Positions 859-27,618 of a stretch of DNA of 29,766 bases are shown here, piece by piece. The stretch spans positions 249,835 to 279,600 of the forward strand of contig NIVC01000055.1 in the NCBI GenBank assembly GCA_002269645.1, read 5' to 3'. How positions within the stretch are numbered: the stretch's first letter is position 1; each line of letters starts with the position of its first letter. The notes beneath the pieces were generated by a model. It was not told the origin of the DNA. It saw only the letters and a list, made by a program, of their open reading frames with translations, and did no database searches. This DNA comes from Macrostomum lignano. Lineage: Eukaryota. Position numbers and translations under genes: made by a program.

Positions 859-872
859 TCCCTCTTCCTTTC
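859..872 (-). other. Polypurine tract of element B
   Basis: The - strand reads GAAAGGAAGAGGGA abutting the 3' LTR and overlapping the gag-pol stop codon. Confidence 0.9.
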
Positions 873-4596: not shown

Positions 4597-4600
4597 TGTT

Positions 4601-4618: not shown

Positions 4619-4619
4619 T

Positions 4620-4852
4620 TGTTATGTTTTCTTTTACACCGAAGAAAGACGGAAGATAGTGTTTGAGCGTTTGCGAGCTTATGCCACTCGAGAGCATAGC
4701 CGTTTCAGAAACTTAATATATTTCTTTGGCTCGCGAGCCGTCTCAAGCATTTAATACTGTACCGAGTATCTAGAGTTTCAACCCTAGACACTTTAGAAGC
4801 AGAAAGCAAACGAGGCCGAAGTCTATAAGAAGTTAGAAGTCACGTCACAACA
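4620..4852 (-). repeat. 5' LTR of element B
   Basis: 233-bp copy of 626-858, followed on the - strand by the PBS. Confidence 0.97.
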
Positions 4853-6237: not shown

Positions 6238-6395
6238 TGTGACGGTGGACTTTTCTTTGTGCCACCCCATTTTTGATAAGTCTATAAATAGACCTGGTGC
6301 ACGCCAGAGGGCGATACTTGTTTTTTTTTGGTTTTGGCTCAGTTAGGAGCCTTGGACAATCAATATCATTCTTATTTATTTACAAGAATGCAACA
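6238..6395 (+). repeat. 5' LTR of element C (158 bp)
   Basis: Matches 10844-11005 except for a 6-bp gap after TATAAA and T9 versus T7. Confidence 0.95.
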
Positions 6396-7638
6396 TGGTG
6401 GCAGCGGTGCGGGCTCGAAGCACCCGTACAACCTGCGTTCCCAAGACGGGGCGCTCGGAGAAGGCTCCGAAGACAATGCTGAAGAAGCCAGCGGAATCCA
6501 AGATTCAGCTACGCTGGAGGGCGCGAATCTGATGGAGACAATGAAGATGCTCCTGACGCACCAGAGTCAGCAGCTACAAGAAATGACTCGCGCGCAAGAA
6601 AGGCAATCAGCATTTTACCTGGAGCAACTGGCTCGTCAACAAGCGGAGTTCACAAAGCTCCTGGCCGAGTCTAAGCCACGACCACAAGCAGCGGAGCCCA
6701 AGCTGTTTAAGCTGACGGACTCTGATGACATCGAGGCATTCCTGATGACCTTCGAAAGGGCAGCGGCATCGTGTGGATGGCAAAAGTCAGAGTGGACGAT
6801 TCGGCTGGCACCGCTACTGACGGGCGTTGCGCAGAGCGCATTCCACAGTCTGACGACAGCGGCGAGCGCGGACTACGACTTGGCAAAGGCGACCATCTTA
6901 GCGAGATACAACATCGGCGAGGAGACCTACCGACAGCGATTTCGGTCTTTGCGGAAGGCGCCTGAAGAGACCTTCCAGGTGTTCGCGACAAAGCTGGAAG
7001 ACCTGTTTGTCCGATGGATGACAGCTGGGCTGGACGAGGATCAGAGAGAGGAACTGATAAGTGGCGACTCCATCGTCAGGCAGAAAGTGCTTCTGGAGCA
7101 GTTTACGGACTCTCTGACAAGAGGACTCCAGGTGTGGATGCGAGAGAGAAAACCGAAGGACATCAAAGAGGCTGCGAAACTGGCCGATGACTACGCAATG
7201 GCAAGAAACAGCGACAAGGGCGGCGGAACACCAGGACACCCGAGCCAAGAGACCTCTGAGGGGGCGACGGCGTCCAATGCTATGGACAAACAAAGGACGA
7301 TTCAGAGACCGCAAAGCCTAAAGCCTAAGATTAGCTGCTTCAACTGCGGAGGCCCCCACAAGAAGTTTCAGTGTACCAACAAGCCCGCCAATGTCCACTT
7401 GGCCTCAGAGGAAAGAGCTATGGATGCTGCTTCGGGCATGTTCCTCACCGGACATGCGGATGGCAAAGAACTGCTTTTCCTGATGGATACTAGAGCTGAT
7501 CGAACTACGATTCGGCGTAGCTGTCTACCTGAAAACATTAATTGGACAGGACATCATGCACTATTGCGCTGTTTTGGCGGCGACCTACACCGTCTTCCAA
7601 TCGCTAAAGTGGAGCTGCACCTAAAGGGCTACATTTAG
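6388..7638 (+). CDS. gag: Element C Gag (SCAN-like capsid, zinc knuckle) plus N-terminal part of the protease; start codon uncertain
   Basis: DDIEAFLMTFERAA...W...LAPLLTG.AQ and YRQRFR...LEQF...LQVWMRERKP...EAAKLADDY (SCAN-like), CFNCGGPHKKFQC, protease motif reading MDTRAD. The first in-frame ATG is at 6388; the ORF track's TTG start at 6328 lies in the LTR. Confidence 0.85.
   Translation: MQHGGSGAGSKHPYNLRSQDGALGEGSEDNAEEASGIQDSATLEGANLMETMKMLLTHQSQQLQEMTRAQERQSAFYLEQLARQQAEFTKLLAESKPRPQAAEPKLFKLTDSDDIEAFLMTFERAAASCGWQKSEWTIRLAPLLTGVAQSAFHSLTTAASADYDLAKATILARYNIGEETYRQRFRSLRKAPEETFQVFATKLEDLFVRWMTAGLDEDQREELISGDSIVRQKVLLEQFTDSLTRGLQVWMRERKPKDIKEAAKLADDYAMARNSDKGGGTPGHPSQETSEGATASNAMDKQRTIQRPQSLKPKISCFNCGGPHKKFQCTNKPANVHLASEERAMDAASGMFLTGHADGKELLFLMDTRADRTTIRRSCLPENINWTGHHALLRCFGGDLHRLPIAKVELHLKGYI
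6396..6409 (+). other. Primer-binding site of element C, tRNA-Leu type
   Basis: TGGTGGCAGCGGTG is complementary to the eukaryotic tRNA-Leu(AAG/UAG) 3' end ...CACCGCUGCCACCA and sits directly after the LTR. Confidence 0.85.
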
Positions 7639-10600: not shown

Positions 10601-10678
10601 AACACGGTGGCCGATGGTCTCAGCAGGATCTGGGCTAGTGACCGACCAAGTGATTTAGTGACCGACCAAGTGATTTAG
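7625..10678 (+). CDS. pol: Element C Pol: end of protease, integrase, reverse transcriptase, RNase H
   Basis: The frame is open from 7625 (…RTTEVCVADSLPVSALVGLD, protease C-end). Then HESAFAGHLG...CDKC, IDISGP...SDKG...VERF (DDE), WRGPY, RT KLDCCKGYWQI...YIDD, and RH TDSSETGIGAVL...EKEC...SDHKP...ADGLSR. Confidence 0.93.
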   Translation, partial: RATFRTTEVCVADSLPVSALVGLDLISQLKLGGGDAPSTVLGRETRERVHGQPLSANEREWVGAPHRLMPQSEGDERLFAEGIVASGLNQIDPEPAGKTKSRITRAQARKQRQEYNKTRQETAMRPITLDYEAALQDDKELQAAVQTNDLVKESRGRLFRHQAAGEDQLVLPKALRASALSQAHESAFAGHLGTRKTCQRLEQRFWWPTVTKNVKDFVATCDKCQKTARVPGNHKVPLVQVPGVEEAFTKVIIDISGPYTRTASGHQYILSIIDAATRFPEGVPLRKIDAESVAKALVDCFVRTGFPREIQSDKGTNFSSALLQALYRCTGVEGIQSTPYHPQSQALVERFHGTLKNMLRRLPAREKKKWDQYLPYLLFAIREVPNETTGFSSFELLYGRTVRGPLDLLRQTWDEQLSEEKKDIISFVLAQRDRLRAGQEAARNSEELARKRQKLWYDRQSRERELQPGDQVLLLLPSSSKKLHAEWRGPYEVLERCSDVNYRIRMGPATNTFHVNLLKKYNSREAVLMQLPAAATSAPELSDHLTPAERDRLLELVQDFAGVFSETPGRTDLVERRIRTTSDRVVRIRPRREPQAHRQVLQEEIQRMLDLGVIEPSDSDYCSPVCLVAKKDGSVRFTVNFKALNELVAFDSYPMKNIEDLLERVAKAKFISKLDCCKGYWQIPLYEDSKRLTAFAACGKLYQFTVMPMGLNCSSATYQRLMDKLFQGLDNADSYIDDIAVFSATFEQHVEDLREVFGRLKAAGLTVQPQKCYLGGNSADYLGFKLGGGEIGTSEDRVRTITALAQPRTKAQLRSVLGVLNHYRRFVPDYSEKVAALTDLTKKSAPDDLTAAWGEQQTRAFEAVKSLLAREPVLRAPDYSRQFTLETDSSETGIGAVLTQEFEDGIHPVLFVSRRLTSAERSYATIEKECLAVRWAVEKLRHYLLGRRFVIKSDHKPLQYLQMDHANPRLQRWAFSYLSGYDYEIQYQPGESNTVADGLSRIWASDRPSDLVTDQVI

Positions 10679-10715
10679 TGACTGACCAAGTGATTTAGAG
10701 ACTGACTGAGCGATT
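10636..10715 (+). repeat. Tandem repeat, 4 x 20 bp (TAGTGACCGACCAAGTGATT), spanning the pol stop codon
   Basis: Units start at 10636, 10656, 10676 and 10696 and degenerate toward the 3' end. Confidence 0.92.
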
Positions 10716-10834
10716 TAACTTTTATTAAAGTCGTTAGTGGCCAAGTTTGCATTGTTTTTTTGTAAGACATATCCGAACTTTGCGTGACCCTGCGATTGAT
10801 TTTTGGCTTGCGATTTTTCCGGCTTCGATCTTTT

Positions 10835-10843
10835 GGTGGAGGG
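10835..10843 (+). other. Short polypurine tract of element C
   Basis: GGTGGAGGG immediately before the 3' LTR. Confidence 0.65.
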
Positions 10844-11005
10844 TGTGACGGTGGACTTTTCTTTGTGCCACCCCATTTTTGATAAGTCTATAAATACTCG
10901 TAGACCTGGTGCACGCCAGAGGGCGATACTTGTTTTTTTGGTTTTGGCTCAGTTAGGAGCCTTGGACAATCAATATCATTCTTATTTATTTACAAGAATG
11001 CAACA
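10844..11005 (+). repeat. 3' LTR of element C (162 bp)
   Basis: Copy of 6238-6395, followed by the TSD CACGG. Confidence 0.95.
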
Positions 11006-12321: not shown

Positions 12322-12463
12322 GGTCAAAAGTCACTGGCGGTCAAAAGTCACTGGCAGGCAAAATTCACTGACGGTCGAAAGTCACTGACGGTCAAAAGTC
12401 ACTGGCAGGCAAAATTCACTGACGGTCGAAAGTCACTGACGGTCAAAAGTCACTGGCGGTCAA
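12322..12463. repeat. 17-bp minisatellite (GGTCAAAAGTCACTGGC), 8 units plus a partial one
   Basis: Three unit variants recur as a 51-bp trimer (12356-12406 = 12407-12457). Confidence 0.92.
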
Positions 12464-13918
12464 CAGCCAAAGTCCTAGACCCCGCATCATTGCACGGATA
12501 CATGCATATTGTCGTTGTCGACTGCCTCAGGTTTGGACGCATGCCTGTCTTGAACTGCCGTGACTGACTGACTACTTCCTGTGAGCTGCAAATCTGTCGC
12601 GGAAAACCAATGCTCTGGCGCCGAAAATGTGAAGCCGCTTTGACAGTCAGTCATTAAAACAAGTTCCTATTGGGTTTTGACTACAAGACTCACACTACCT
12701 CGGCGATATTTTTGCCGTCTTACATTTAATCCCTAGCTCTGTGACATCCGCAGGTGCTAAATACAGTATTTATTATCTGTGGTAAGATCTGCCTGTCCAA
12801 CTTCTTAACTTTCTACTTTCAGTAGTTGATCTTTCCAACACATTAATATTTAGTCGAATTTTCTATCCTACGAGCTAAGATTTTAGCGACGACAAGTAGC
12901 TTTCATTAAATGTTTAAGTATACCCAGATAATCTAGGCGAAACATGGGATATTTAAACTGAAGAAATTGTCCACTCTAAGAGTGAAACGCTATCAAGGAA
13001 TCCGGGACCAGATCAGCGGTAATAAGCTCGTCCGACTCTCGCATCACAGTACCCAAGGTCAGCGGAATTAGTCTGACTGCTTTCGTCCTCACTGACTTGC
13101 TGACTTCCACCCAAAGGCCCCTGCAAACTGACCTACCAAGCCATCAGAAGGCCAATGTTAATGATTTAAAGTCGATTTTTAAGTTGAATAAAGTTTCCCA
13201 AGGCATAAAGTGAACCCTCAGTTAGATGCATATTCTGATTTTTTAAGGACTGCTTTAGAATTTTAGTCATAGCTATATTTCAATATTGAACAAATGGTCG
13301 AAGAGAGAATTTCTATTGTCGATGCGTACCAACAAGAAACTATCAGTTTCAGGACAGCACAGCTTAGTGCTATATGAGTAAACTATATAAAATATTGTTT
13401 TAATCAATAGATGGGGAGTCAAGTAAAATTCCGGAGTTGAAAAAGCGACATAATAGTCCATAGAATATGATCAGATGATACTTATATATTAATCCTTTAT
13501 CCTTTCACGCGTCAATATCGTGTAATGCCAGGTGCAAAATCTAAAAATAGGTGAGAGTACATAAAGGTATTTCGCCAGAAAATTTGATAACAAAGAAGAG
13601 AATGATAAATCAGTTCTAATGGGACAAATTATCAACAGCCAATCAATACAGAAAATATCTTGATGAAGAAAATAATTAGAATATCGGATAGCATTTAGTG
13701 TCCGCTAAAGCACTTAGTTTGTCCTTGTTTGGATTAGCTAATTTGCATTGGTAATTAGCAATCTGTGACCAATCAGAGCTTCAGGCAAGTCCGCGATCAA
13801 ATCCAGCCGGTGGTATTTGTGACTGAAGCGGAACAGAGTTATTCATCATATCTGTGTCTGACTAACTGGTGCCTCCATAGAGATTTGATTAGCAAAAAAG
13901 CTTAGATAGAGAGCTCAC

Positions 13919-14266
13919 CGTCCAGACTTTGAGTAGAATAAACCAGGCGGAATCCTTTCGAAGTAACGCTTGAGTCAGTTCTGAATCGAAGCAGCACAGG
14001 ACCTTGCAGGCTTAGTGAAACTCCAGTGGCATTGCTGTTAACCAGACTCGTTGTCAGCTTGCTATCGTCTACCTCATCAGAGATGCTGAATCTGTCGTAT
14101 ATGAAGATTTTGTCACAGCAGTTCTCAATGTCCACTTCTTCCATCCGGATGTTGACGGGGCCCGTCGCGTCGATCAGCCATTGATAGTCTTTGTTATTAG
14201 CGTATCTTGCGTACATCGACGATCCATAGTTGTTTGGACACTTGATCGTGCCCAAGTCCTCCGAAA
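13919..14266 (-). CDS. CUB exon 23 (type G3)
   Basis: ttttag|TT...G|gtgagc, 348 nt; DLGTIKCPNNYG...DIENCCDKIFIYD...FRTDSSVTSKGFRLVY. Confidence 0.9.
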
Positions 14267-17200
14267 CTAAAAGAAATGCGGTCAACTTGCACTCGATTTG
14301 CATTCTAAAGCCATTGTGTACATCGTAAAGGTTGCGACTACTAATAACAAAACTGATCAAATTAAATTCTACACTATTAATTACCTTATACACCTACGAC
14401 TACCCTTTTACTCTTAAAGTAGCTTACACTTCTTCTCAGAGACGAGGACTACTAGACGAAGTGTTCCTAGTGATCTTTGCTCAGAGAAAAGTACTCGTGT
14501 TACTCTCGCACTCAATTTGCAAGTTTGGGTAAAACGATCACACACAAACGCACACACATACCTACCGAAAAACCATTTTTAGTATAAGACAAATCTTAGA
14601 GATTTAGTATAGGTGGATTTAGTATATTTAGATTAGAGCTGCAGTTGAATAAAATCAAGCGAAGTAAATATTTAACCCTCTCAGTGGTGAATGCAATCGT
14701 AAAAAATTCAACACCTCAAGCTCACCTACAATCGGTCCGCGTCTATAAGAGAACGCAATGCCCCGACCATCAAAGCGTCTGCCAGTTTTAACTCTAATCA
14801 GCAGGGGTCCCGTCAGGACAAAGTCCGTTGACGTGGCATTCGCGTCAGTTAGAATGAACAGCAAGTTTTGCTCATCGGCATCGGCGCTTGCTTGATCAGA
14901 AATTGCAAAGACTTCAATGAAGCTTCCATCTGCTCCGAGATTTGACCAGTTGAATGCCAGCTTGTAAACATATTTGCCCGGAATCAGCCACTTATACTCC
15001 ATCCACTTCTCCATTGTCCTGTTAGCATCGGTTGGGTACTGAATCATTGCAAAACTTTGGGACTGATTGGCGAAAACTGAAACTGTTTGAAAATAGCGGG
15101 GGATCAGAGATGATTGGAAAATGTCAGAGGAAGTGTAAAAAGTGCAATTACCAGTCCTAGGCTCGATGGAATAGGACAAGTCGAAGCCCTGACCGACTAG
15201 CCGTTTATCCGTGCTAAACCGGATCAGCACGGGACCAATCAACTTATACGTTGCCGATGTCGCATTCGCCTGTGTCAGTGTGAACCTCAGCTTGCTGTCT
15301 TCTGGCTCATCGGTTTCTCCATCAGTCATCTCGTACAACTGGATGATGTCATTTCCGTAGCCAATGTCAGCAGATGTGACAGTGATGAGGACGAAATTCC
15401 TTCTGTTGATGGTCCATCTGTACTCCATCTCGTTAGCGTAAGTCGAGCCAGTCTCTTCGGGACAACTAAAGCTACCAGAGTCATTGGTCATGGCGACGTG
15501 CACTGAAAATGTGAACAAATTTTAAGCATCACATTGCCCACATTGTGCAAAGTTGGAACTTAGTGTCAATCAGCAGATTAATATTATCGCAATACAATGT
15601 GCAACTAAAGAATTCTCACCACTTCTGATCTGATAATCGAAAACAACTTGACCGCTCGCCGAAGCAGAGTTGTTGGACGAATATACAACTGCAAGGATGC
15701 CTTTGTGCGTCACGTGATTCGCAAATGGGATCCGTCTCGCACTTTTCTGCATCGCTGGGCTGCTTAGCAGATCCATGTCGCCAGCGAATATCTCTACAGA
15801 AGACGAAGTCGTGATACGGTTAAAGATGAGGTGCGTCAGGAAATCATGAGAACCAGTTGGTGCCACAATCCACTTTGTGCTCGAAGGTCTCGGGAGGACG
15901 GTGGATCCTTCCGCTGGATTGCAGAGTCTCATGCCTCTGCTGCCCCTGATTACCTCGGTTGCTGGTGAAGCCTCTGAAAGATTCAGTTGTGTTTCAGTGC
16001 TAATGATTTGGTGGTCTTTGGAATCAAATGACTGAGACGGAGGTTCTGGCCAGATTTTTCTTGGCGATGCAGTCACAATGATGGTAAACTCATAATCCTT
16101 GAATGAGGGCGTACTTGGATGTAAGAAATCGCTAAGGTGTTAACTTAAAAAGGTGATCTCTGAGTAGGAAGTTTTCTGAATCTTCAACAAAACAAGGAAT
16201 TACCTTCAGCCGAACCATCAGCTGTGTAAGTGAGCTTGAAGTCCCTGCGGCTGCCGTCGCTGTTGGCTGTGAACCGAAGCAGCACAGGACCGGACAGTCG
16301 GAACTCTGACTGGCTGGCACTCGAATCGGACACCACAAATTTCAGATTGTCCTCCGTCTCAGACCTCGTGTTTTGGTACAGGTACACTTTGTCCCCAGCA
16401 GGAAGATTGATGGAGCTGAACCTGATGCGAACCGTGCCGCTTCTGTCGATGATCCATCGATGGTCCAGGTTGCCATCAGTTGCTTCACTTTGCGAGGAGT
16501 AACTGATTTCTCCTTCGGCATCACTCAGAGAAACTGAAATTCGTGGCAGGCGTTTAGGAGGTCAAATCTAAAGGTCAAAGCGGCCTGCTTTGAACTATAA
16601 GATGCAATAAGAGGAAAGGGTGGAACTCTTTAGATGACAAAGACACAGCAGACTTCGGACTCAACTCACCATTCCCAACGGAGTAGGTGAACCTCAAGCC
16701 GAATCTGTCTCCGCTGGCTCCAGTTCTCAGCACCACGGTGACGAATCCGCTCGCTCTCAGGGTCTTCCTCTCGCCAAGTAGGCCAGTCTGACTGAATATG
16801 GGAGACTCGCTGAGCCTGGGCTCAACTCCCGTGTACACACTGACTGTATCGCCATGCGGCTGGCCTCCCTCGGCATCAAAGAGCTGCAGCTCAACCGTCT
16901 GTTGAGGGCTCACAGCGATGGACCAGGCTCTCGATGAGCCCACTGGTCCTCTGGACGGATAAATTGCTTTGCTTCCCTCAATGTTTTTGATGAGTTCAGT
17001 CGGCGTTGGTAGTTCTGGAATAATGCGAGGGTAAATATGAGTCCAGCTCTTATCCGGCCATTAGCAAACAGTGAAAGGTAAGAGTGCTGGCGATACTAAG
17101 AATGTGTTCGCTGGATAAGTTTGTTACACTGAACAGGGCAAATAATCATCGTTTCCTATCGGAGACACTATTATTATCCGCTGTCGTGTATTCTGTGGTG

Positions 17201-20200
17201 ACAGCCCGCCCAGTTTTGTCTATCCGCCCTACATGCTATTGCTGAACAGAAACACGGTCCAAATTATCGTTGTCATTTCTGCGGTTGAAATATCCCATAA
17301 ACTGGATGAATTAGTTTAGAAATAATTTTTCATTGATTTGACCAATAATGGAGCCACTGAGTCACCAACGGCAGTGCGAACCGCATTAAAAACTGAAGTA
17401 CAGTAAAAAGACGCTAAATCGATTTTCCCAGTAATGAGCTGAAGGTAAGGAACACACAGTACGAGTATAATTGTCGCATCGCTAGTGCTTTTGCTCTCAA
17501 GAAGTCGGATTTTTCTAGCGCAAAGTTTTTTCGACCGAATTATTCTATAGCGAAAGCCCCTTCAGAGCCGTGCCCTCTAGCGATTCGGAAAATATTCGGT
17601 CTTTACAAGCGTGCACCTCATTTCTAAAAAAATCGAGTGTGCCGTTCACTTCAGTTGTCCATGGCAAACCGACCTTAAGCATATCAAGCGTCTGTACACA
17701 TTGAATGCTCTGTAATGAAGGCGTGTTTATACTTATTAAACGTGTTTGAGCAGTTGAACAATCATGTATCTGGGACTCAAAAGTTTATTTACAATATTTC
17801 CTATAAATGATGAATAAATGGAAAATGATCATATTTTACCTTCGCTCCCGCTCTGATACGACAGCTTGAAGATGTTGCCACTGACCCGCTTTGTGGTGAC
17901 TTGAACCAGCACGGGACCTCTGAGCCTGAACTCTACAGAGGTCGCATTCGTCATTGACCTGTGCTCAGAGACGAAGGCCAGCCTGTCCTCGCTGGGGTCA
18001 GCAGTCATCTCGTACAGTCTGACAATATCTGCGTGAGACAGCTTCAGCGAGACCCAGCCTTGACGATCAATGAGCCACCTGTAGTCAGTCTCGAGGTCAT
18101 ACTTCATCTCTTCTTCCGCAGGAAGCTGCTCGCCTTCAGAGCAGACAACATCGGCTTTTTCGTCTGTCAGGTTTCTCGATTTTACTAAAACGGTTTCATT
18201 CAGAGCGTACTGAGGAATGTTACGAATATTAAAGATGTAAATAAGTAGTTTGACGGAAACAGTAACATCACTTTCTGTTTGTTTTGTTTTGATTTGTTTT
18301 GTCACTCTCTGTAAATTTTTACTGACTAAATATTTAATTAACAACAACTTACTTCTGCTGTCAAGAGCCGAGTAAGATAAGTTGAAGCCCGCCCGATGAT
18401 ACTAATGTCAGTAACGAATTGGATCAGCACCGGACCAACGACATGAGCTGTTTTGTTATCACTTGTCACGGTAAACCCTTTCTTAGAATCCTGAGCATCT
18501 TCAAAAAGCTGAGTCTTCTCATAGAAACTAATTTTATCGATTCCCGTTTCAACGTCATACGAGTCAACCTTCATCTCGAGCAGGCTCAGATCGCCGATCC
18601 ACCAGGCGTACGTTTTGTTGTTTAAATAGTAACCGCTGCCGAAGTTCTCTGGGCATTGAAGCTTTCCTGAGTCGACTGAAAAGGCATCGAAAATTGAATA
18701 GACGTCAGATGCTTTGCATTGGCTCAAATGTAGACCCACCTTGCGTGCTAAAATTTAACTTAAATAACAATAATTAACATTACCAATTACTATAAACAGT
18801 AATGAGAGTATCTGGAACTCAGGAATTCGAAACTCACCCACGTATCGATCGAGATAATAATCGATTATAAAGCCTCTTGACGCGTTCTGATGATCAGTTT
18901 TAAATCGGATCAACGCAGGTCCAACCAGAACATACTTTATTGAGCTCCAGCTGTCTCCAGTCAGTGTGTATTTTCTGTTCTCAGGCTGCGGTTCCGCCGA
19001 AGAGTCAGTCTTTTCATAGAATTCAAGCACATCGTTTGCGTCCTGAATGCCCATGCTTCTAACTGTCAAAAAGACAACTCTGCTCGATGGAATGTACCAA
19101 CGATAGTCCATCTGATGCTCGTAGGCTTCATACTCTTCATTCGGACACCTGATGCTGCCCGAATCGTTTAGCAGATTACGGGAAACTAAAAATGTAAAAG
19201 AAGTGGCTTGGTGGAGAAACACCCACGTGCATAGAAAACCAAGCGTCAGAATACGCAAAGCTGCAAAATTTTACACCGTGAACTCAAAATTTTAAACTAA
19301 GGAAATGCATAAAACACCAAAATGGCTCACGAGTTCGTTCCTCAACAGTATAAGACAAACTGAAGCCTTTGCCAACAAGAGACTCATCCGTGCTAAACCG
19401 GATCAGCACGGGACCAATCAACTTATACGTTGCCGATGTCGCATTCGCCTGCGTCAGTGTGAACCTCAGCTTGCTGTCTTCTGGCTCATCGGTTTCTCCA
19501 TCAGTCATCTCGTACAACTGGATGATGTCATTTCCGTAGCCAATGTCAGCAGATGTGACAGTGATGAGGACGAAATTCCTTCTGTTGATGGTCCATCTGT
19601 ACTCCATCTCGTTAGCGTAAGTCAGCTGGATTCCTCTGGACAGCGAAGGCTTCCAGAGTCCTCGCTAAGGTAGCGATGCACTGAAAGGAAGTAAGGTTTA
19701 TGGTCTCACCATGGTCTCACGGTGCACTGAAAAGGGCAAGAGCTCACCGTTTCTGATTTGATAATCGAATTGAAAGACCAAATCAGTACAGCGGTCAATA
19801 ATACTAGACTCTTCTATCTGTTCCCAGTAAACGGAAACAGGTCCACCTTTACTGATGTGCTGTGTCAGTCCACTGAACTGAGCCTCAAAGCTATCATTGG
19901 AGAGTCTCTGAGTAAGCCAATTTCCAGCATAAACGAACCAACCGCAGGTATACGAATCGTAAAATTCAAAAAATTCTTCTTCTTTGAAAAGAATATGAAC
20001 GGTGAATTCATGACTCGGCTTTGGCGCAATGACCCAAACAATTTTTGCTCTTTCAGTCCTGTCGGTGGTATCAAATTTAGGGAAGCTCCATCTGGTACCT
20101 CGACTGCTCTTCACTACTTCAACCGCATTTTCCACTGCAAGAAGGTTTGATTGGGATAAAAATGGTTCACGATTACGTACATTTAGTTTTAGTTTTAATA

Positions 20201-23200
20201 TGCACGCGACTTCTCAAAGGCTTACACTTCAAATCGGATCTGACTGATATGCCAGCCGGAAGCTTCTCGGGCTGCCGTCTCCCGCTGCCGTGATGCGAAT
20301 TAAAACAGATCCTCTCAGCCAGAACTCCGACTCGCTGGCACTCGCATCTGCTAGCACAAATCTTCTCTTGAGCTCATCCTTGGACGTGGTGTTTTCGTAC
20401 AGATGAAGCTTGTCTCCGTCCTGGAGATTGAGGGAACGAACATTGATGCGAACAGAACCGCTGCTTTGAATGATCCAGCTGTAATCCATGTCCAAGTCGA
20501 AAGCTGAACTATCCGACGAGTTTTGAGGGAACCTGATTTCTCCCGATCGTCCTGACAGTAAAACTTTAAGTGCAAAGAAGAATAGATCATGCAATGCAGA
20601 CTAAAGTAGTATGACTATATTTTTGCATTAGTTATTGTTAAAAATGAAAACAAAGTATGTATAATTACCGTTTTTCACTGAATACTGGAGGCCGAACCCT
20701 CGCTTTGCTTCATTGGCGTCGGTTCTCAGCACCACGGTGACGAATCCGCTCGCTCTCAGGGTCTTCCTCTCGCCAAGTAGGCCAGTCTGACTGAATATGG
20801 GAGACTCGCTGAGCCTGGGCTCAACTCCCGTGTACACACTGACTGTATCGCCATGCGGCTGGCCTCCCTCGGCATCAAAGAGCTGCAGCTCCACAGTCTG
20901 TTGAGGGCTCACAGCGATGGACCAGGCTCTCGCAGAACTCGGTCCGCAGCTGCTTCGACCATCAGGCATGAGGCAGCCCTGCAGTCCGTCCAAGTTTCGC
21001 AAAAGCGCAGTTGTCATCGATAAATCTGCAGGGAAGTTATTTAGAAAAGTCACTGTTCCTATCTAGAGATACAAATTGATTGATTGTCGCTTTCAGATTG
21101 CCTCACTTTGTCGGTTGACACTGAACGTCGCCCCGAACGGCACTATCGTCGGCCTCATCCTTCGCGATTGAAGCCGAACAACTGCTGGGCCTCTTAGTTT
21201 GAACTCGGTAGACATCAAATCGCTGAGCGGTGCATCAGTCAGGGAGAACACGCGACTCCTTGGAGTTGGGATCTTCGTCCTCTCGTGCAGCTCTAGCTTG
21301 TCGCAACCGCTTAGCAATTGAGCCTGCACGAATCGAATGCTGACCGCCGCTGTTGTGTCGACGACCCACCTTCGGTCAATCTCCATGTCGTAGCCATCAG
21401 TATCGCAGACATCCAGCCCAATGGCATTCCTCAAGTTGCTTGACTGCACTCCAATTTCACCTTGAGTCTGTGTCAGAACACTGGATATTACTAAAATATT
21501 ATAGAAACCGTGCATTATTTCAGACAATAGAAAATACCAAAGACGCGTAAGATGGGATCAAAAACATCAAAGTGACATCAGCATACCGAATTGGTCTCCT
21601 ATTTCATAGGAAAAGTTTAGAGCTCTTTGCATTGGTCGACCAGCTGTAACTAACTTGATCATACCAGGTCCGATCAGTCTGTATGTAGATGAAGTAGCAT
21701 TCCCCTTCGTCAGTGTAATGTTTGCAGCTGACGAGTCCTTTCTCCATAACTGGATTTTGTCGCAGCAGTCTGAGATTTCCACCCCACTGAATTTGACTGC
21801 CACAGCTGCCTTTCGGTCGATTTTCCAAATGTAGTTTACCTGGGCTTTGGTGAATGATGGCGGGTTCACCCACCGAACTTCACCCGAGTCTCCTGACAGA
21901 CCTGAAAGTTCGAATTCAACTTTTAACTTGTCTTATGAAGCAGCTTTCATAAATATAAATATAATGAACTACTGTTTGCTTGAATACATAAATTTTTTAT
22001 TTTTGAAACGAGCCAGGTAAGAAAATGCAGAAATCTATCATGAACTCCTAAATTCTAATTAAAATCAAATTACGACGTATAATCAAACTTTGATAAAAAA
22101 ATACTATACTAATTATTTCTTACTTGAGGTTTCTTCTAGATAGTATGTCATGCGAAACCCGTCACGATTGCCACTGCCGTCAGTTTTGAACCTGATGAGC
22201 ACTGGTCCCTTCAAGGTGTATGTTTCACCGTATCCGCTCCCTGTAAGCCTGTACTTTCGTTTATTTTCGTCAGGCTTCTCATGCACCGGTGAGTTTTCGT
22301 ACAAGCCGATCCAATCATAATTACTCTCAGTATCATAGCGAATGAACGTAAGCACCACCGTTTTCTGCTCATAGATGCTCCACTCGTAGTCAACGTTGTT
22401 ATCGTACTTAGAGTATCCATAGTTCTCCGGATATGAAAGGTTTCCACTGTCCACTGAAAGGATTTAAGGAAAATATAATAACGAGTAAAAAGCGGTTGTT
22501 TAGTATGTGCAGACAAAATATTCCCAGAAAGACTGAAAGCTTTTAGGCAATTATGTGCTAACAAACTTCATGGAAACATTGCGAATTGATGCTTACAGAT
22601 TTTGCTGCCAGCCTGATAGTAGAGCTGGAAGCCGGGAGCAGTAACTTGAGAGTTCGTTCTGAACCGGATGAGCACTGGTCCGACCAGCGTAATATTCGAC
22701 GCTTCTGCAGCCTCCTGAGTCACATTGAGCTTCCATCTCCGCCGATCTGGCTCTCCACTCTCATCGACCTTCTCATAGAACTCGATGGTGTCTTGAATGT
22801 CAATAAAGTCGAACCGAATGACAATGATGCTTTTTCGATTGATTGTCCATCGATAGTCCATGAACTTCTCATAGTTCACCAGTGCGGTCTCGGGGCAGAA
22901 AATATTGCCGGAGTCATAATTTAATATTCGGTGTACTGCAAACGTTAATGAGAACATGTCTACACAGTAAGTTTTATTCGAGCTATAATCATCTCTCAGT
23001 TAGTAGCTTAAAGAGAATTCTATCTAAAGAACTGGAATTCTTGATATCCACTAGAATCCACTTGTTTACTACGAGCCAAAATTCCAGTTCACAACCATGC
23101 AACTGGCTGTGCACTGTTTATACTTTCTTCGAAAAAACATGCATGTGAAACCGTAAGTTTTATCTTCAAACAACATGGTCGCATTTCGATAGGATAAGAA

Positions 23201-26200
23201 TCGGCAATTTGATAAGACCCTAAAGTCACAACTCAATGAAATGAACATACTGAGATAAGAATCGGCAATTCGATAAGACCCTAAAGTCACAACTCAATGA
23301 AATGAACATACTGAGATAAGAATCGGCAATTCGATAAGACCCTAAAGTCACAACTCAATGAAATGAACATGCTGAGATAAGAATCGACAATTCAATAAGA
23401 CCCTAAAGTCACAACTCAATGAAATGAACATACTGAGATAAGAATCGGCAATTTGATGAGACCCTAAAGTCACAACTCAATGAAATGAACATACTGAGAT
23501 AAGAATCGGCAATTCGATAAGACCCTAAAGTCACAACTCAATGAAATGAACATACTGAGATAAGAATCGGCAATTCGATAAGACCCTAAAGTCACAACTC
23601 AATGAAATGAACATACTGAGATAAGAATCGGCAATTCGATAAGACCCTAAAGTCACAACTCAATGAAATGAACATGCTGAGATAAGAATCGACAATTCAA
23701 TAAGACCCTAAAGTCACAACTCAATGAAATGAACATACTGAGATAAGAATCGGCAATTTGATGAGACCCTAAAGTCACAACTCAATGAAATGAACATACT
23801 GAGATAAGAATCGGCAATTTGATGAGACCCTAAAGTCACAACTCAATGAAATGAACATGCTGAGATAAGAATCGGCAATTTGATGAGACCCTAAAGTCAC
23901 AACTCAATGAAATGAACATGCTGAGATAAGAATCGGCAATTTGATGAGACCCAAAAGATATAACTCAATGAATTGATATTCTGACTTACAAGTCCGCTCT
24001 TTAGTAGTGTAGGACAGATTGAATCCCTGACCAACAAAATCTTTGCCCGGGACGAAACGGACCATGACTGGACCCGGAATTCGGTAGGCCCCCCGTGCTG
24101 TAGCATTCGACTGAGTCAGAACGAACTTCAGCTTGGCCTGCTGTGGCTCGTCGGTCAAATAGGCTTCCTCGTACAGCTCGATGACGCCACTCCCAATGTC
24201 CACTGTTGAGACCTCGATAACAACTAAGTTAAGCCGGTTGATTGTCCATCTGTACTCCATTTCGCTCTCTAAGGTCTCACCAGACACTTGAGGACAGCGA
24301 ATTGAACCCGAGTCTTTTACGAGAGGCTCTTGAGCTGAAAAGAAGAAAGAAAAAATGCTCTTAGCTGCTTGCAAGTGAAATAAAATTTGACTAAAATCTG
24401 AAAGCGCTTTGAGTATTTTAATAAGCATCATAGCATTTTGCAATAAAATGACTACTCATAGAAGACAAAGACTGTATCATTAGATAAAAATGCCAACATT
24501 CATTACCGTTCATTAACTGAAACTTGAACTCTCGCTGAGATCTAATGAAGCTCAAAGCCCGTGGTCGATAAACAACAGTGAGAGGACCGTTGTACCTGAC
24601 GATGCTCGCATACGGGATCCGCTGGAGTGGCTCAGAATTCGACAAGCTGGTGACGGCTCCCTCATAGAGACTTATTGCGATTCCTGACTCCACTGGCAGC
24701 TCTGGCAGGTACAGCAGAACTGAGCGCCCGGGCTTGGCTGCAATGACCCATGCAGTAGGCGACCCGTTCTCGGGGATAAGAGCTCTCGAGCCTCGATAGC
24801 TGTCAATCAGCTCAACAGCCATGTCGGTATCTGCAGTGTCACACAAGCAGTCGCGTCAATCGCATATCTATGCTTGTCACCTAAGAGATAACAATTCAAT
24901 TTTTAGGAAATTATCACTCACTGCCCGACTGGTCAGCTGCATACGACAGTCGAAAGTCTCTCGACTGACCGTCTCCGCTGGCAACTAATCGAATCATGAC
25001 GGGACCGGACAGACGGAACTCCGACTCTCTGGAGCTCGCATTGGTCACCAGGAATCTCAGAGCCGCTTCGTCCTCAGACGTTGTGTTCTCGTAGATGTAC
25101 AGCTTGCCATTGGGACGGAGGCTTATGGAGGCGAATCGGATGCTGAGTCTGATGTCTCTGCTAATGAACCAGCGGTAGTCAATGTCGCTGTTGAACTCCG
25201 CTGAGCCCTTCGGGAACCCGATCTGTCCACTCGGTTCCGCTTGAGGAGCTTAATGAAGGTGAGAAAATATTACCGATTTAGTTTTAGTTACCAACAGAGC
25301 TGCTGAAATTTGCGTAGTCAGTGCCTTGACTGTGTATATTCTGCTTCACTTTTACCTGACTCATGCATTTGGCTGTTATGCCCTACATCACATTATATGC
25401 TAAGCTTTTCGTTGCACTTCGATTATCATAGTTCAAAACGATTCTTACTGCTGTATACAGTGTAGGAGAGACCGAGCCCACGTCGTGATCGTCTGGCTTC
25501 TGTCGTCAGCACCACAGTGACGAATCCGTTCGCTCTCACGGTCTTCCTCTCACCAAGTAGTCCAGTCTGACTGAATATCGGGGACTCGCTCAGCACAGGA
25601 CGAACCCCATTATATACGCCTATCGTATCCGTATGAAGCTGACTTCCCTCGGCATCAAATAGCTCGAGCTCAACGATTTGCTGGGGATTCACGGCGATAG
25701 ACCATGCTCTTGTTGTGACATTGCTCACAGCGATGTCGGCACCTTTACTTTGGTAACAGATTCTCTCTCCTTTTTCATTTTTGATTATTTCAGTAGGCAT
25801 TTCCAGATCTGAAGCGACAATGGAATCATCATTGTAATAGTCTAAGAACGGAGTCACCCTAAACTTTAGTGATTCGTTTTAAGTCTAGAATTACCTCCGT
25901 CGCTGCTTCTGTAGGACAGCCTAAAAACTCGTCCCCTTGTCTGTGTCTTCTTAACCAGCACCAGCACCGGGCCGAACAGTCGGAAACGCGACGTCCCTTC
26001 TCTCTCTTTCGGTCCGTTGGTAAAGACGGGCTCCTTGTCGGGGGTTGTCGTCATCTGGTAGATCCGAGCGAGGTCAGAGAAGGACAGCTTGAGGTCGATT
26101 CTCCCGGGTCGGTCAATGAGCCATCTGTATTCAATGCTAACATTGCTGTCTCGATCCGAGACTTCCAGCTCTGAGCAGATTGCGTCGTCGCTGGGCTCGG

Positions 26201-27559
26201 TGAAAGTTCTGAATCGAACTAAAATTGCGAAAATAGGGTAGTTTTTCAACTATCAGCTCATTGCTTTGATATTACTTATACTATTTACCACTTATACTAA
26301 TACGTATACTTATCCTACTTATCCAAGCTTTTTTTCAGTATAGGAAGCCTTCATTAAATACATGCAGACAGTAGCCAACGTTAACAACGTTACTCACCCA
26401 AAGATTCCTCAAGCGTGTAGGTTAGGTTGAATCCCCTCTTTGCGACGCTACTATCTGTCTTAAATCGAATTAGCACAGGAGCAATGAGCACAAGCGCTTG
26501 GGATGTAGCGTTATTCGGATTGATTCGGAATTTCGGATTCCTGCGATACGATACTTCGAGGTCGTCCGTACCCTCGAAAATCTCCAAGCGGTCATATGGG
26601 GTCTCCAGTTCCGCAAAGTGGAATCGGATGGCTACAGCCTTCGGCCCGCGAATGGTCCAGTTGTAGACTTTGAGTTCTCATAGACGGCGCCGGGCTGCCC
26701 AAAGTTTTCCGGACATTGAATTGTGCCAGTGTCGGCCGGGACTGAAACTGTGGATCAGGGACCACATCAGCACTTGGATGAACATAGCTGAGCTGACAGA
26801 ACTGCTTTAATTGCAAAACAGTCTAGAACTTTGATGGGTCTGTAAACTTTGATTGACTCATCTTGACTGTCAGTCAACACTTCAACTGCTAAAAATTTAC
26901 TGCTGGTCCTAACCTATTATTGAAGTAAATCATCGGCAGAGAAACGTCAGGAACCAAATTCTGACTGTTCTTGATGATGGCAACACAATACATATATTCC
27001 CTTGATAGCTTCTGATTATAGATTTCTTAACACTGATTTAAACTTTTTAACATTCATTTCGATGCGGGCTCGTGTTTGAATGTAACCAATATTACGTGAG
27101 TTCAAATCATCATTGTTGTCTGGACTTTAAGGCCCGGACTGATTATACTGAATATTACCGATTTTTCGCGGCAGACACAATAACTTGCTGTCTTGAACGC
27201 AGACAAATCTGTAGTACATCCACTTGTACTACAGATAGCTGATGTTGAATAAAAGTGTCAAATACAGTCATCAATGATCTTAAAAATGACTGTGCAATGT
27301 TCATCCGAACTCTTGACTAAAAATCGTGGAACAAATGAAGAGCTAAAAAAATCGAGGGCAATAGAACATCCACAATCACATTGCGGTCAGTCAGTCAGTC
27401 GCAAATCTGACTTGATCAGAGGCTGCAGTTCTCAGTCCATAGCATTAGGATGTTGAAATATTGGCGTCAACAATCAGACTCACCCGCTACAGCAGAGCCG
27501 GTTTCAAATGCCAAGAGGCTGCCTAGAAAGGCGGTGAGTAGCAGTTGCAGCAAATCCAT
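13919..27559 (-). CDS. Multi-exon gene for a large secreted multi-CUB-domain glycoprotein (signal exon plus 23 CUB-like exons, ~2,680 aa; terminal exon unresolved)
   Basis: Every exon is bounded by AG and GT in phase 1. Each repeats the CUB scaffold SG.I..P...Y....Y.W.I...D.L.(I/L)YE...GPVLIRF.TD....GF.L.Y. Nineteen CUB exons have lengths divisible by 3 and four are 1 nt short. No EGF repeats are seen, so it is not called cubilin. Confidence 0.88.
14726..15082 (-). CDS. CUB exon 22 (type F3)
   Basis: aaacag|TT...G|gtgagc, 357 nt (alternative in-frame AG at 15076); MEYKWLI...LTGPLLIRVKT. Confidence 0.85.
15152..15502 (-). CDS. CUB exon 21 (type E3)
   Basis: tttcag|TG...G|gtaatt, 351 nt; DSGSFSCPEE...MEYRWTINRR...GPVLIRFSTD. 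Confidence 0.9.
15620..15973 (-). CDS. CUB-like exon 20 (type D3, divergent)
   Basis: ctttcag|AG...G|gtgaga, 354 nt; EVIRGSRG...KWIVAP...FDYQIRSG, paralogous to exons 13 and 5. Confidence 0.72.
16204..16533 (-). CDS. CUB exon 19 (type C3)
   Basis: tttcag|TT...G|gtaatt, 330 nt; EGEISY...DHRWII...SEFRLSGPVLLRF. Confidence 0.88.
16670..17014 (-). CDS. CUB exon 18 (type B3)
   Basis: ttccag|AA...G|gtgagt, 345 nt; RAWSIAV...LSESPIFSQTGLLGERKTLRASGFVTVVL. Confidence 0.88.
17840..18184 (-). CDS. CUB exon 17 (type A3)
   Basis: ttttag|TA...G|gtaaaa, 345 nt; DYRWLIDRQG...FRLRGPVLVQV. Confidence 0.85.
18353..18675 (-). CDS. CUB exon 16 (type G2), 1-nt deletion near 18388-18390
   Basis: tttcag|TC...A|gtaagt, 323 nt. 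Adding one G gives GRGFNLSYSALDSR and restores phase 1. Confidence 0.82.
18838..19185 (-). CDS. CUB exon 15 (type F2)
   Basis: ttttag|TT...G|gtgagt, 348 nt; DSGSIRCP...MDYRWYI...FKTDHQNASRGF. Confidence 0.9.
19331..19680 (-). CDS. CUB exon 14 (type E2), 1-nt deletion at 19623/19624
   Basis: tttcag|TG...C|gtgagc, 350 nt. DSGSLRCPEESS then shifts frame into TYANEMEYRWTI. Confidence 0.82.
19748..20134 (-). CDS. CUB-like exon 13 (type D2, divergent)
   Basis: ttgcag|TG...G|gtgagc, 387 nt; EVVKSSRG...VWVIAPKP...FDYQIRNG. Confidence 0.8.
20226..20563 (-). CDS. CUB exon 12 (type C2), 1 nt short, or carrying an in-frame TGA at 20229-20231
   Basis: ttaaag|TT start; 338 nt to the gtaagc donor; SGEIRFP...DYSWII...SEFWLRGSVLIRI. 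Confidence 0.75.
20669..21025 (-). CDS. CUB exon 11 (type B2)
   Basis: ctgcag|AT...G|gtaatt, 357 nt; core almost identical to exon 18. Confidence 0.88.
21107..21490 (-). CDS. CUB exon 10 (type A2)
   Basis: ttttag|TA...A|gtgagg, 384 nt; EIDRRWVV...GCDKLELHE...FKLRGPAVVRL. Confidence 0.8.
21587..21901 (-). CDS. CUB exon 9 (type X2)
   Basis: tttcag|GT...G|gtatgc, 315 nt; DSGEV...NYIWKI...EISDCCDKIQLW. Confidence 0.88.
22124..22453 (-). CDS. CUB exon 8 (type G1)
   Basis: tttcag|TG...A|gtaaga, 330 nt; DSGNLSYPENYG...YDNNVDYEWSI...DTESNYDWIGLY...FKTDGSGNRDGF. Confidence 0.92.
22597..22935 (-). CDS. CUB exon 7 (type F1)
   Basis: ttgcag|TA...T|gtaagc, 339 nt; DSGNIFCP...MDYRWTI...GPVLIRFRT. Confidence 0.9.
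23193..23983. repeat. Intronic 61-bp minisatellite, 12 full units plus one degenerate unit
   Basis: Unit GATAAGAATCGGCAATT(T/C)GAT(A/G)AGACCCTAAAGTCACAACTCAATGAAATGAACAT(A/G)CTGA, starting exactly every 61 nt from 23193 to 23925. No spacers. Confidence 0.97.
23990..24334 (-). CDS. CUB exon 6 (type E1)
   Basis: ttttcag|CT...T|gtaagt, 345 nt; DSGSIRCP...MEYRWTINR...FVGQGFNLSY. Confidence 0.9.
24507..24830 (-). CDS. CUB-like exon 5 (type D1, divergent)
   Basis: ctgcag|AT...G|gtaatg, 324 nt; ELIDSYRGSR...AWVIAAKP...YNGPLTVVY. Confidence 0.72.
24922..25248 (-). CDS. CUB exon 4 (type C1), absent from the ORF track
   Basis: cattaag|CT...A|gtgagt, 327 nt, open throughout; SGQIGFP...DIDYRWFI...KLYIYENTTS...SEFRLSGPVMIRL...DFRLSY. 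Confidence 0.88.
25449..25841 (-). CDS. CUB exon 3 (type B1)
   Basis: ttcttag|AC...A|gtaaga, 393 nt; RAWSIAV...LSESPIFSQTGLLGERKT. Confidence 0.82.
25895..26218 (-). CDS. CUB exon 2 (type A1)
   Basis: ttttag|TT...G|gtaatt, 324 nt; EYRWLIDRPG...FRLFGPVLVLV. Confidence 0.85.
26398..26747 (-). CDS. CUB exon 1 (type X1), 1-nt deletion near 26669-26671
   Basis: ccacag|TT...G|gtgagt, 350 nt. DTGTIQCPENFG...YENSK then shifts frame into VYNWTI...ETPYDRLEIFEG...FKTDSSVAKRGF. Confidence 0.82.
27484..27559 (-). CDS. First coding exon of the CUB gene: signal peptide
   Basis: ATG in gcaaATGG context; MDLLQLLLTAFLGSLLAFETGSAVA; 76 nt (3n+1) ending at a GTGAGT donor in phase 1, matching the CUB exons. 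Too short for the ORF track. Confidence 0.85.
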
Positions 27560-27618
27560 TTGCTGGTTGCTGCACAAGAATTTCTTAGGGCTCCGGTGCT
27601 GCAGCTTGACCAGCATAA

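Follow-up and report, generated by a model that had tools for sequence, protein, structure and literature searches.

Gene organization and locus identity

The window, by which we mean the whole 29,766-nucleotide stretch of Macrostomum lignano DNA that was analysed, carries on its minus strand a gene of 25 exons running from position 27559 to position 13797 (Table 1). A signal exon, which starts at the ATG and ends at a phase-1 donor (G/GTGAGT), is followed by 23 domain-sized exons, each bounded by AG and GT and each in phase 1. Searched with a family HMM, the window yields exactly 23 copies, every one of them on the minus strand within 26677–13905, and none outside this interval. The splice-site survey and the HMM thus confirm the signal exon and 23 domain exons proposed in an earlier sequence-only reading of this DNA, and the many introns under 110 bp described there amount to 9 of 24. 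On the publicly annotated splice sites, the domain exons measure 315–387 nt; the earlier range of 315–393 nt was right in its minimum and slightly too generous in its maximum. Use of two acceptors that were chosen initially would give 306–393 nt. Two public annotations differ at exons 2, 18 and 23, where alternative acceptors lie 6 or 21 nt apart.

The earlier reading placed the gene at 13919–27559. The start codon is indeed at 27559, but at 13919 only exon 24 ends; the coding sequence continues to 13797 through a previously overlooked 26-nt terminal exon (13822–13797), in which the stop codon lies. Exon 24 runs into a phase-1 GT donor instead of a stop codon, which at first suggested that the gene continues into or beyond the neighbouring retrotransposon cluster. 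This was rejected, since the terminal exon matches the 8-codon C-terminus of full-length relatives (P0002 and P0152). With ~1.8 kb between them and the stop codon, the retrotransposons leave the gene uninterrupted.

Splicing the window's exons gives an mRNA whose longest ORF, 1,191 aa, is identical to GenBank PAA92384.1 (P0154, 1,191 aa, annotated as a hypothetical protein), which identifies the locus as BOX15_Mlig033186g3 (g3 in what follows) of the M. lignano assembly Mlig_3_7. Read from the true ATG, the window as assembled reaches a stop after 63 codons. The length of 19 of the 23 domain exons is divisible by three, and the remaining four (exons 2, 13, 15 and 17, at 350, 338, 350 and 323 nt) are each 3n+2. 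The description of all exons as phase 1-1 therefore holds for every boundary, but not for the length of these four exons in the window sequence. The 1,191-aa GenBank ORF stops at an in-frame TGA that arises from the base missing in exon 13.

Table 1. Exons of the CUB-array gene in window coordinates; Ca-site triads are judged from alignment columns only
Feature	Position	Strand	Description
Exon 1	27484..27559	-	ATG 27559; signal peptide MDLLQLLLTAFLGSLLAFETGSAVA, judged by hydrophobicity
Exon 2	26398..26747	-	CUB type A; Ca-site triad E/D/D; 350 nt (3n+2), one A short in A4 run near 26672 (versus L001 and L002); second acceptor 6 nt downstream, at 26741; Pfam CUB 30.7 bits
Exon 3	25895..26218	-	CUB-like type E; block 1 first position; 324 nt; in-frame 3-nt deletion versus sister locus g2
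Exon 4	25449..25808	-	CUB-like type B; 360 nt; type-B AF2 model matches CUB structures
Exon 5	24922..25248	-	CUB-like type D; 327 nt
Exon 6	24507..24830	-	CUB-like type C; 324 nt; type-C AF2 model matches CUB structures
Exon 7	23990..24334	-	CUB type A1; block 1 last position; 345 nt
Exon 8	22597..22935	-	CUB type A; 339 nt; Pfam CUB 14.5 bits (below threshold)
Exon 9	22124..22453	-	CUB type A; Ca-site triad; 330 nt; Pfam CUB 28.5 bits
Exon 10	21587..21901	-	CUB type A, CCDK motif; 315 nt
Exon 11	21107..21490	-	CUB-like type E; block 2 first position; 384 nt
Exon 12	20669..21025	-	CUB-like type B; Ca-site triad; 357 nt; Pfam CUB 16.1 bits
Exon 13	20226..20563	-	CUB-like type D; 338 nt (3n+2), one C short (C3 to C2) near 20238
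Exon 14	19748..20134	-	CUB-like type C; 387 nt
Exon 15	19331..19680	-	CUB type A1; 350 nt (3n+2), one base short near 19625
Exon 16	18838..19185	-	CUB type A; 348 nt; Pfam CUB 18.3 bits
Exon 17	18353..18675	-	CUB type A; Ca-site triad; 323 nt (3n+2), one G short (G4 to G3) near 18395
Exon 18	17840..18184	-	CUB-like type E; block 3 first position; 345 nt; UniProt model takes other acceptor, 18163
Exon 19	16670..17014	-	CUB-like type B; 345 nt
Exon 20	16204..16533	-	CUB-like type D; 330 nt
Exon 21	15620..15973	-	CUB-like type C; 354 nt; sequence used for AF2 model
Exon 22	15152..15502	-	CUB type A1; block 3 last position; 351 nt
Exon 23	14726..15082	-	CUB type A; 357 nt; second acceptor 6 nt downstream, at 15076
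Exon 24	13919..14266	-	CUB type A; Ca-site triad; 348 nt; Pfam CUB 27.3 bits
Exon 25 (coding part)	13797..13822	-	26 nt; acceptor ccgcttcag/TC; (V)TNTTGWI then TGA

Domain types and the encoded protein

Across the whole protein, Pfam CUB scores 121.8 bits (E=2e-35), and Pfam finds no other domain type in it (no EGF, no sushi), as the sequence-only reading had held. Taken singly, exons 2, 9 and 24 pass the gathering score (30.7, 28.5 and 27.3 bits), and the other 20 are below the threshold or unmatched; stray weak per-exon matches (Anamorsin_N, DUF4758, FhaA_N and others) all fall below threshold and were disregarded. The earlier label ‘CUB-like’ is thus borne out by Pfam alone for three exons, and for the others it depends on profile–profile comparison and fold evidence. 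A profile of types A, D and E matches the CUBs of PCPE-1 and cubilin in the PDB; hhalign connects type B to this A/D/E profile (E=3.6e-6) and type C, the most divergent of the five types, to type B (E=1.4e-8). The AF2 model of type B (pLDDT 82.7) is matched by Foldseek to NRP2, spermadhesin, PCPE-1 and C1r CUB2 with TM-scores up to 0.68, and that of type C (pLDDT 71.6) to PCPE-1, Neto2, NRP2 and spermadhesin at 0.5–0.62, although the input alignments held clearer CUB exons and may have pulled both models towards the CUB fold. The profile and structure checks that had been suggested for each exon, with models made for types B and C, come out in favour of CUB. By these profiles and models, the products of all 23 domain exons are read as CUB folds, which fall into five diverged types.

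The domains depart from the four-cysteine, two-disulfide pattern that is typical, though not universal, of CUBs, with 0–3 cysteines each. Tyr or Arg stands in place of C2, ahead of an invariant Trp, and exons 10, 11 and 24 alone retain C3. Judged from alignment columns only, the acidic Ca-site triad is complete in exons 2, 9, 12, 17 and 24, partial in exons 4, 15, 16, 19 and 22, and absent elsewhere.

The product of the intact sister loci has 2,689 residues, 2,679 from the Met, with 39 sequons, 22 cysteines in those 2,679 residues and a pI of 5.4. Its sole hydrophobic stretch is the N-terminal signal peptide, and no transmembrane segment was found. These properties predict a secreted, N-glycosylated and acidic protein of ~2,680 aa and ~300 kDa. 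The role of such a protein would be extracellular, that of a multivalent binder or scaffold, in which the five domains that keep the triad could serve as Ca2+-dependent contact points, like the ligand-binding CUBs of cubilin or PCPE-1.

Sister copies and existing records

The neopolyploid genome has several near-identical copies of the gene, g3 being one of them, so that the search for paralogous arrays put forward in the earlier reading finds them within the same assembly. At two intact sister loci, g1 and g2, the models include the complete ordered set of 23 domain exons plus the terminal exon, as UniProt A0A1I8JLF6 (2,681 aa) likewise contains all 23 domain exons. The single all-CUB protein of ~2,680 aa, one of two outcomes envisaged beforehand, is thus what the 2,689-residue models of both loci describe. 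Other copies of the family (g4, Mlig029297g1 and Mlig028314g1) are annotated as truncated.

The Mlig_3_7 annotation is RNA-seq-guided, combining StringTie/TACO, a de novo transcriptome and TransDecoder; a TACO isoform-frac of 0.75 discards minor isoforms, alternative transcripts were pruned for GenBank, and the assembly was polished by Pilon with Illumina reads (PMC5730564). Our transcript evidence is indirect and consists of these annotation models, and since the copies are 98–99.8% identical, RNA-seq reads are not assignable to g3 alone.

A library of 1.8 billion proteins contains no close relative outside M. lignano, and cubilin is not matched at the level of orthology, which is the outcome of the orthologue search suggested for this gene. 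We found no paper on the gene or naming Mlig033186, and its gene IDs are absent from the supplements of M. lignano expression papers that were searched. The gene is nonetheless already catalogued, in GenBank as PAA92384.1 and in UniProt through sister records named ‘CUB domain-containing protein’, and the earlier designation as a candidate ‘undescribed system’ was an overstatement, even though we found no published study.

Frame breaks in the assembled copy

The four exons of aberrant length can be read in two ways. One is that g3 was recently inactivated, with the four one-base deletions present in the animal's DNA; in this neopolyploid genome with its redundant copies, the duplicate would be an unprocessed pseudogene of young age, while g1 and g2 remain functional. 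Several observations fit this: the assembled ORF ends 63 codons after the ATG and GenBank annotates only the internal ORF; the assembly has been polished with Illumina reads; retrotransposon ORFs totalling ~8 kb in the same window have no frameshift; relatives are annotated as truncated; and in the comparison with g2 the density of exonic one-base indels is similar to that of non-coding DNA. We at first favoured a real pseudogene, given the four frameshifts, the intact retrotransposon ORFs, the Pilon polishing and the fact that three of the gaps did not look homopolymer-like against g2, and reversed this view after comparing the window with a second contig (L002).

L002 is 99.8% identical to the window over 13,990 bp, from which it differs by 10 substitutions and 14 indels. 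All 13 of the single-base indels are homopolymer-length differences, and each of the four one-base exonic gaps in the window sits in a short homopolymer. At each of the four exonic sites L002 carries the additional base; its exons 2–20 are open, and exon 21 has a single-base loss of its own. Within exons the two contigs are separated by 2 substitutions and five one-base indels that go in both directions; four real frameshifts arising in so short a time would be improbable. Relative to g2, pN/pS is 0.38 (pS 1.72%, pN 0.66%) and no stop codon derived from a substitution is found, which also argues against a pseudogene. As for the polishing, it performs poorly where several near-identical copies exist. 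Because L002 carries the base at all four sites, and because indels outnumber substitutions and all the single-base ones concern homopolymer length, the four gaps are most likely PacBio consensus errors in homopolymers and not real lesions, and we regard inactivation of g3 as unlikely. At one site or several, real homopolymer slippage may nevertheless be the cause. The practical consequence for work with Mlig_3_7 is that the 1,191-aa GenBank product is probably a homopolymer-error artefact of a redundantly assembled haplotype; further family members labelled ‘truncated’ may have the same origin.

Constitutive or combinatorial splicing

The second outcome envisaged in the sequence-only reading was that the symmetric exons serve as cassettes, with regulated skipping or mutually exclusive choice generating Dscam-like strings of CUBs for recognition. 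All introns are in phase 1, so any subset of exons could be skipped in frame; some older UniProt models of homeologous copies do lack exons (type-C exons in P0001), and the acceptors at exons 2, 18 and 23 differ between public annotations. Regulated skipping, if true, would yield a family of CUB strings of varying length and composition. Against this, the RNA-seq-guided models of two intact loci hold all 23 exons, and the exon-poor UniProt models carry frameshifted peptide and look like prediction artefacts of an error-rich older assembly. The exons belong to five diverged types in a fixed block order and are not interchangeable variants. Intronic 8-, 10- and 12-mers that are shared or complementary across introns do not rise above the level in shuffled introns, self-BLAST reveals no similarity between the introns of different blocks, and there is no transmembrane segment.

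Comparison with Dscam1-type clusters leads in the same direction. In both, paralogous exons of much the same length form an array, but in those clusters one exon per cluster enters each mRNA, whereas here the public mRNA models retain all of them. Dscam uses half or whole Ig exons in a membrane receptor, selected through docking/selector RNA pairing; the present gene has neither such complementarity nor a membrane anchor. The combinatorial proposal thus finds no support here, and we give cassette splicing of the Dscam kind very little weight. We think it about equally improbable that the gene is a Macrostomum-restricted, nearly cysteine-free, CUB-only giant whose exons are skipped in regulated subsets, or to bypass damaged exons, for recognition, mating or adhesion. 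Exon skipping at low frequency may occur, given that the annotation pipeline discards minor isoforms and that alternative transcripts are pruned for GenBank.

Relation to known CUB proteins

Could the gene be the flatworm orthologue of cubilin or CSMD, that is, of a known endocytic or neuronal multi-CUB receptor? Its size is cubilin-like, its CUB array is long, and cubilin and CSMD3-like proteins are among the PDB and library matches. Cubilin in particular shares a very long tandem array (27 CUBs, against 23 here) without a transmembrane segment, and some domains of cubilin and, by alignment columns, of the present protein have the acidic Ca2+-site residues, which in cubilin bind ligand; the present protein would likewise work as a rod of binding modules. 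Cubilin, however, has an N-terminal stretch and eight EGF repeats, which are absent from the present protein, where the array begins right after the signal peptide; the module that ties cubilin to amnionless is thus missing. The canonical cysteines are absent as well. Sea-urchin cubilin reaches only 179 bits, spread over 17 stretches, compared with 1,520–1,906 bits for the M. lignano copies, and bacterial CUB proteins score equally well or better. Most CUBs of human CUBN are each encoded by two exons, whereas here each domain has one exon.

CSMD1-3 are likewise giant extracellular proteins dominated by many CUBs, and an amphioxus CSMD3-like protein is one of the library matches, but they have sushi domains between the CUBs, a transmembrane segment and a cytoplasmic tail, none of which is present here. 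With no EGF, sushi or transmembrane part, orthology to cubilin or CSMD is the least credible of the readings considered. The best structural matches of the type-B and type-C models, and the best matches of the sequence profile, are to spermadhesins, PCPE-1, TSG-6 and neuropilin a1/a2, which are secreted, ligand-binding proteins with one or two CUBs of two disulfides each, as opposed to 23 domains with few cysteines. An array of 23 CUBs and nothing else, lacking the usual disulfides and any close relative among 1.8 billion proteins outside M. lignano, is unusual, and this flatworm is a tractable model (RNAi, transgenesis, in situ hybridization) in which the biology of such a protein can be pursued.

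Growth of the exon array

We consider it probable, on balance, that g3 is one copy of a constitutively spliced, 25-exon gene for a secreted protein of 23 CUBs, which grew by exon duplication and whose frame gaps are artefactual. A block of five exons with types in the order E-B-D-C-A1 is present three times (exons 3–7, 11–15 and 18–22), and the array would have grown by tandem exon duplication that included the threefold duplication of this block. Textbooks describe one-domain exons in phase 1/1 as the usual arrangement for extracellular modules, CUB included (class 1-1 modules in Patthy's exon-shuffling rule), and this layout does not point to any special mechanism. The gene is an ordinary product of exon duplication: it shares with class 1-1 modules one module per exon, flanking phase-1 introns and tandem duplication of exons or blocks, and nothing essential differs.

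What is added here is the threefold block and intragenic tracts of near identity. Exons 12 and 19 are nearly identical over ~210 nt, and exons 15 and 22 share a 240-nt tract with one differing position. From their sequence, we read these tracts as gene conversion between paralogous exons, a process that would keep parts of such exons nearly identical. If the overall reading of the gene is right, the locus is a tidy textbook case of a giant extracellular protein built by duplication of phase-1/1 exons and blocks together with gene conversion.

Gene structure

The CUB gene lies on the minus strand and has the structure listed in the table, as derived from stretches open between stop codons and from a scan for splice sites. 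Of its 24 introns, 9 measure less than 110 bp. When the six-frame translation of the whole window was searched with a family HMM made from the exons, exactly 23 domain copies were found; they lie between 26677 and 13905, all on the minus strand. The signal exon and 23 domain exons described in the sequence-only reading are borne out. Its lower gene limit, 13919, was misplaced: exon 24 ends at this base, and the terminal exon lies beyond it. That reading had also taken all domain exons to be phase 1-1. Phase-1 introns do flank all 23, but exons 2, 13, 15 and 17 have lengths of 3n+2 in the window. Extracellular modules of this kind are known to be encoded, as a rule, by single exons flanked by phase-1 introns.

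Features of the window and classes of domain exons
Feature	Position	Strand	Details
Start codon	27559	minus	splice-site/ORF scan
Exon 1	from 27559	minus	signal exon, 76 nt, end G/GTGAGT
Exons 2–24		minus	n = 23, 315–387 nt each, AG/GT borders, phase-1 introns both sides
Exon 25	13822–13797	minus	terminal coding exon, 26 nt, acceptor ccgcttcag/TC, encodes V-TNTTGWI + TGA
Type A (incl. subtype A1)			all-against-all comparison, tree
Types D, E			clearly related to type A
Type B	exons 4, 12, 19		three copies highly conserved among themselves
Type C	exons 6, 14, 21		very divergent
61-bp tandem repeat	23193–23976		intron 7; 12.9 copies, 96% matching
17-bp (51-bp higher-order) tandem repeat	12322–12463		GGTCAAAAGTCACTGAC; downstream of CUB gene
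Young Ty3/gypsy LTR retrotransposon	626–4852	minus	LTRs 626–858 and 4620–4852; ORF 871–4596
Second LTR element	6236–11005	plus	LTRs 6236–6395 and 10842–11005, 95% identical
Third element, gypsy-like	4853–6235 and 11006–~11950		host of second element; protease-RT and integrase parts flank insertion
128-aa ORF	280–666	plus	just outside first LTR

A sister-copy UniProt model begins right after an AG (ctgcag/CACCGG; window 27598–27600), 39 nt 5′ of the ATG, and no stop codon lies upstream. This AG would fit a spliced-leader trans-splice acceptor; such trans-splicing is common in M. lignano (PMC5730564).

Identity and relatives

When the mRNA of the window is spliced, its longest ORF matches GenBank PAA92384.1 (BOX15_Mlig033186g3, 1,191 aa) exactly, which identifies the window as that locus of Mlig_3_7. 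This ORF starts at an internal Met in exon 3 and stops at a TGA in exon 13. Models of the sister loci g1 and g2 comprise 2,689 residues (2,679 from Met) and include the terminal exon as well as all 23 domain exons. Mlig_3_7 is a Pilon-polished PacBio/Canu assembly with an RNA-seq-guided annotation (StringTie, TACO, de novo transcriptome and TransDecoder), in which a name prefix is common to copies with transcripts at least 95% identical (PMC5730564).

A word-indexed search returned one relative, an M. lignano 'CUB domain-containing protein'. With a profile made from 17 exon translations, a full HMMER scan against 1.84 billion representatives gave two M. lignano proteins at 1,906 and 1,520 bits, the next match at 395 and those following at about 200; the cluster of the top two consists of ten M. 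lignano entries. Ranked after these copies are flavobacterial CUB proteins, a fish hypothetical protein, an amphioxus CSMD3-like protein and sea-urchin cubilin. No close orthologue was found in this library, from which other Macrostomum species may be absent. The CUB gene is real and complete, and is already catalogued yet uncharacterised; its product is a multi-CUB secreted protein made by exon duplication.

Domain types and comparison with known families

The whole protein matches Pfam CUB (E = 2e-35), with only exons 2, 9 and 24 exceeding the gathering score in per-exon scans. All-against-all comparison and a tree divide the 23 exons into five types. Profile–profile comparison connects type B with A/D/E (E = 3.6e-6) and type C with B (E = 1.4e-8), and among PDB entries the A/D/E profile matches CUB domains of PCPE-1 and of cubilin. 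AlphaFold models of one type-B and one type-C exon, made from alignments that included clearer CUB exons, are both all-beta (pLDDT 82.7 and 71.6), and in Foldseek they match solved CUB domains best (neuropilin, spermadhesins, PCPE-1, C1r, Neto2 and TSG-6). Several lines of evidence, from sequence, profiles and predicted folds, point to the CUB fold for every type, so the earlier observation that no other domain type is present holds.

Unlike typical CUBs, the domains lack the four canonical cysteines (0–3 Cys per domain, 22 in the whole protein). In the alignment, exons 2, 9, 12, 17 and 24 have the full acidic Glu/Asp/Asp triad that marks Ca2+-binding CUBs. The protein of an intact copy has a mass of 300.7 kDa, a pI of 5.4 and 39 N-X-S/T sequons, and its sole hydrophobic stretch is the N-terminal signal. 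Judging from triad and fold, it would be likest in its working to the cubilin CUB rod and the CUB pairs of PCPE-1 or C1r/C1s, which are ligand-binding modules, some acting via a Ca2+ site. Membership in two families was considered and rejected: cubilin has EGF repeats, which this protein lacks, and bacterial CUB proteins are at least as similar to it as cubilin is; the sushi domain and transmembrane segment of CSMD proteins are likewise missing.

The broken reading frame

The 3n+2 exons could belong to a young pseudogene or result from assembly error. Relative to the DNA of g2, which is about 1–1.6% diverged, one base is missing in each of the four. Differing sites amount to 0.90% in exons and 1.60% in non-exonic DNA, pN/pS is 0.38 and no substitution-derived stop codons were found against g2; this comparison alone is insufficient to tell the two explanations apart. 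The g5 locus (NIVC01000601.1) is far closer, being 99.8% identical to window positions 29766–15791 over 13,990 bp, with only 10 substitutions against 14 indels. Thirteen of these indels involve a single base, and each of them is a difference in homopolymer length; the window is the shorter sequence at eleven indels and g5 at three. The g5 copy keeps the extra base at all four exonic sites (A4, C3, T2 and G4, near window positions 26672, 20238, 19625 and 18395 respectively), and its exons 2–20 are all open multiples of three; its exon 21 has a one-base loss of its own. Indels that outnumber substitutions, are restricted to homopolymers, occur in both directions and are not depleted in exons are the signature of long-read consensus error, not of evolution. 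On this pattern we rate the four frame breaks as quite likely artefacts. The 1,191-aa GenBank product is probably their result, and the apparent pseudogene state of the window copy probably an assembly artefact.

GenBank gives several gene copies (g3, g4, g5, Mlig029297g1 and Mlig028314g1) as truncated proteins whose tails are out of frame. Many Mlig_3_7 gene models are probably affected by indel errors left in haplotypes that were assembled redundantly.

Origin of the array and the splicing hypothesis

The type order E-B-D-C-A1 occurs three times (exons 3–7, 11–15 and 18–22), and the three five-exon blocks can be aligned end to end. No intron similarity was found between blocks, so the block duplications are old. 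Exons 15 and 22 nevertheless share a 240-nt core with one differing position, and exons 12 and 19 a core of ~210 nt with two or three differences, while the flanks within the same exons are sharply diverged; both near-identical cores are also present in g2. This is the pattern that intragenic gene conversion would leave.

The symmetric exons had also suggested a combinatorial, Dscam-like splicing system, which the present evidence does not support. Two intact loci have RNA-seq-guided models in which no domain exon is missing, and the same is true of one UniProt model (A0A1I8JLF6). Two older UniProt models of homeologous copies are exon-poor, but they also contain out-of-frame peptide stretches and therefore look like prediction artefacts. 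The exons belong to diverged types that follow a fixed order, and are not interchangeable variants; k-mers common to, or complementary among, the introns show no excess over shuffled controls, and the protein has no membrane anchor. Where annotations disagree, it is only in the choice of acceptor at exons 2, 18 and 23, the alternatives being 6 or 21 nt from each other. Any low-level exon skipping may have escaped the models, since the annotation pipeline suppresses minor isoforms (PMC5730564).

The acceptors at exons 2 (26741/26747) and 23 (15076/15082) are tandem cag/tttcag sites and those at exon 18 lie at 18163/18184; GenBank and UniProt models choose differently among them, so that Ser-Val is gained or lost at exon 2 or 23, and a stretch of 7 residues at exon 18. 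They could represent genuine minor splice variants, or noise in the annotation.

Transposons and repeats around the gene

A cluster of LTR elements begins about 1.8 kb past the CUB gene stop codon and is missing at the corresponding point of the g2 locus. The Ty3/gypsy element has 233-bp LTRs that are 99.1% identical and an unbroken ORF of 1,241 aa (gag-protease-RT-RNaseH-integrase). In the second element, the gag matches a SCAN domain and the integrase lies upstream of RT-RNaseH, a layout we take to be that of Gmr1-like gypsy elements. The 128-aa ORF, which matches nothing in Pfam and lacks a counterpart in the g2 DNA, may be a further repeat. The g2 counterpart of the 17-bp repeat region (about 24190–25570 of the g2 DNA) is much longer, and the 61-bp repeat has only about 6 copies in g2 (13599–13956 of that DNA), so its copy number differs between gene copies.
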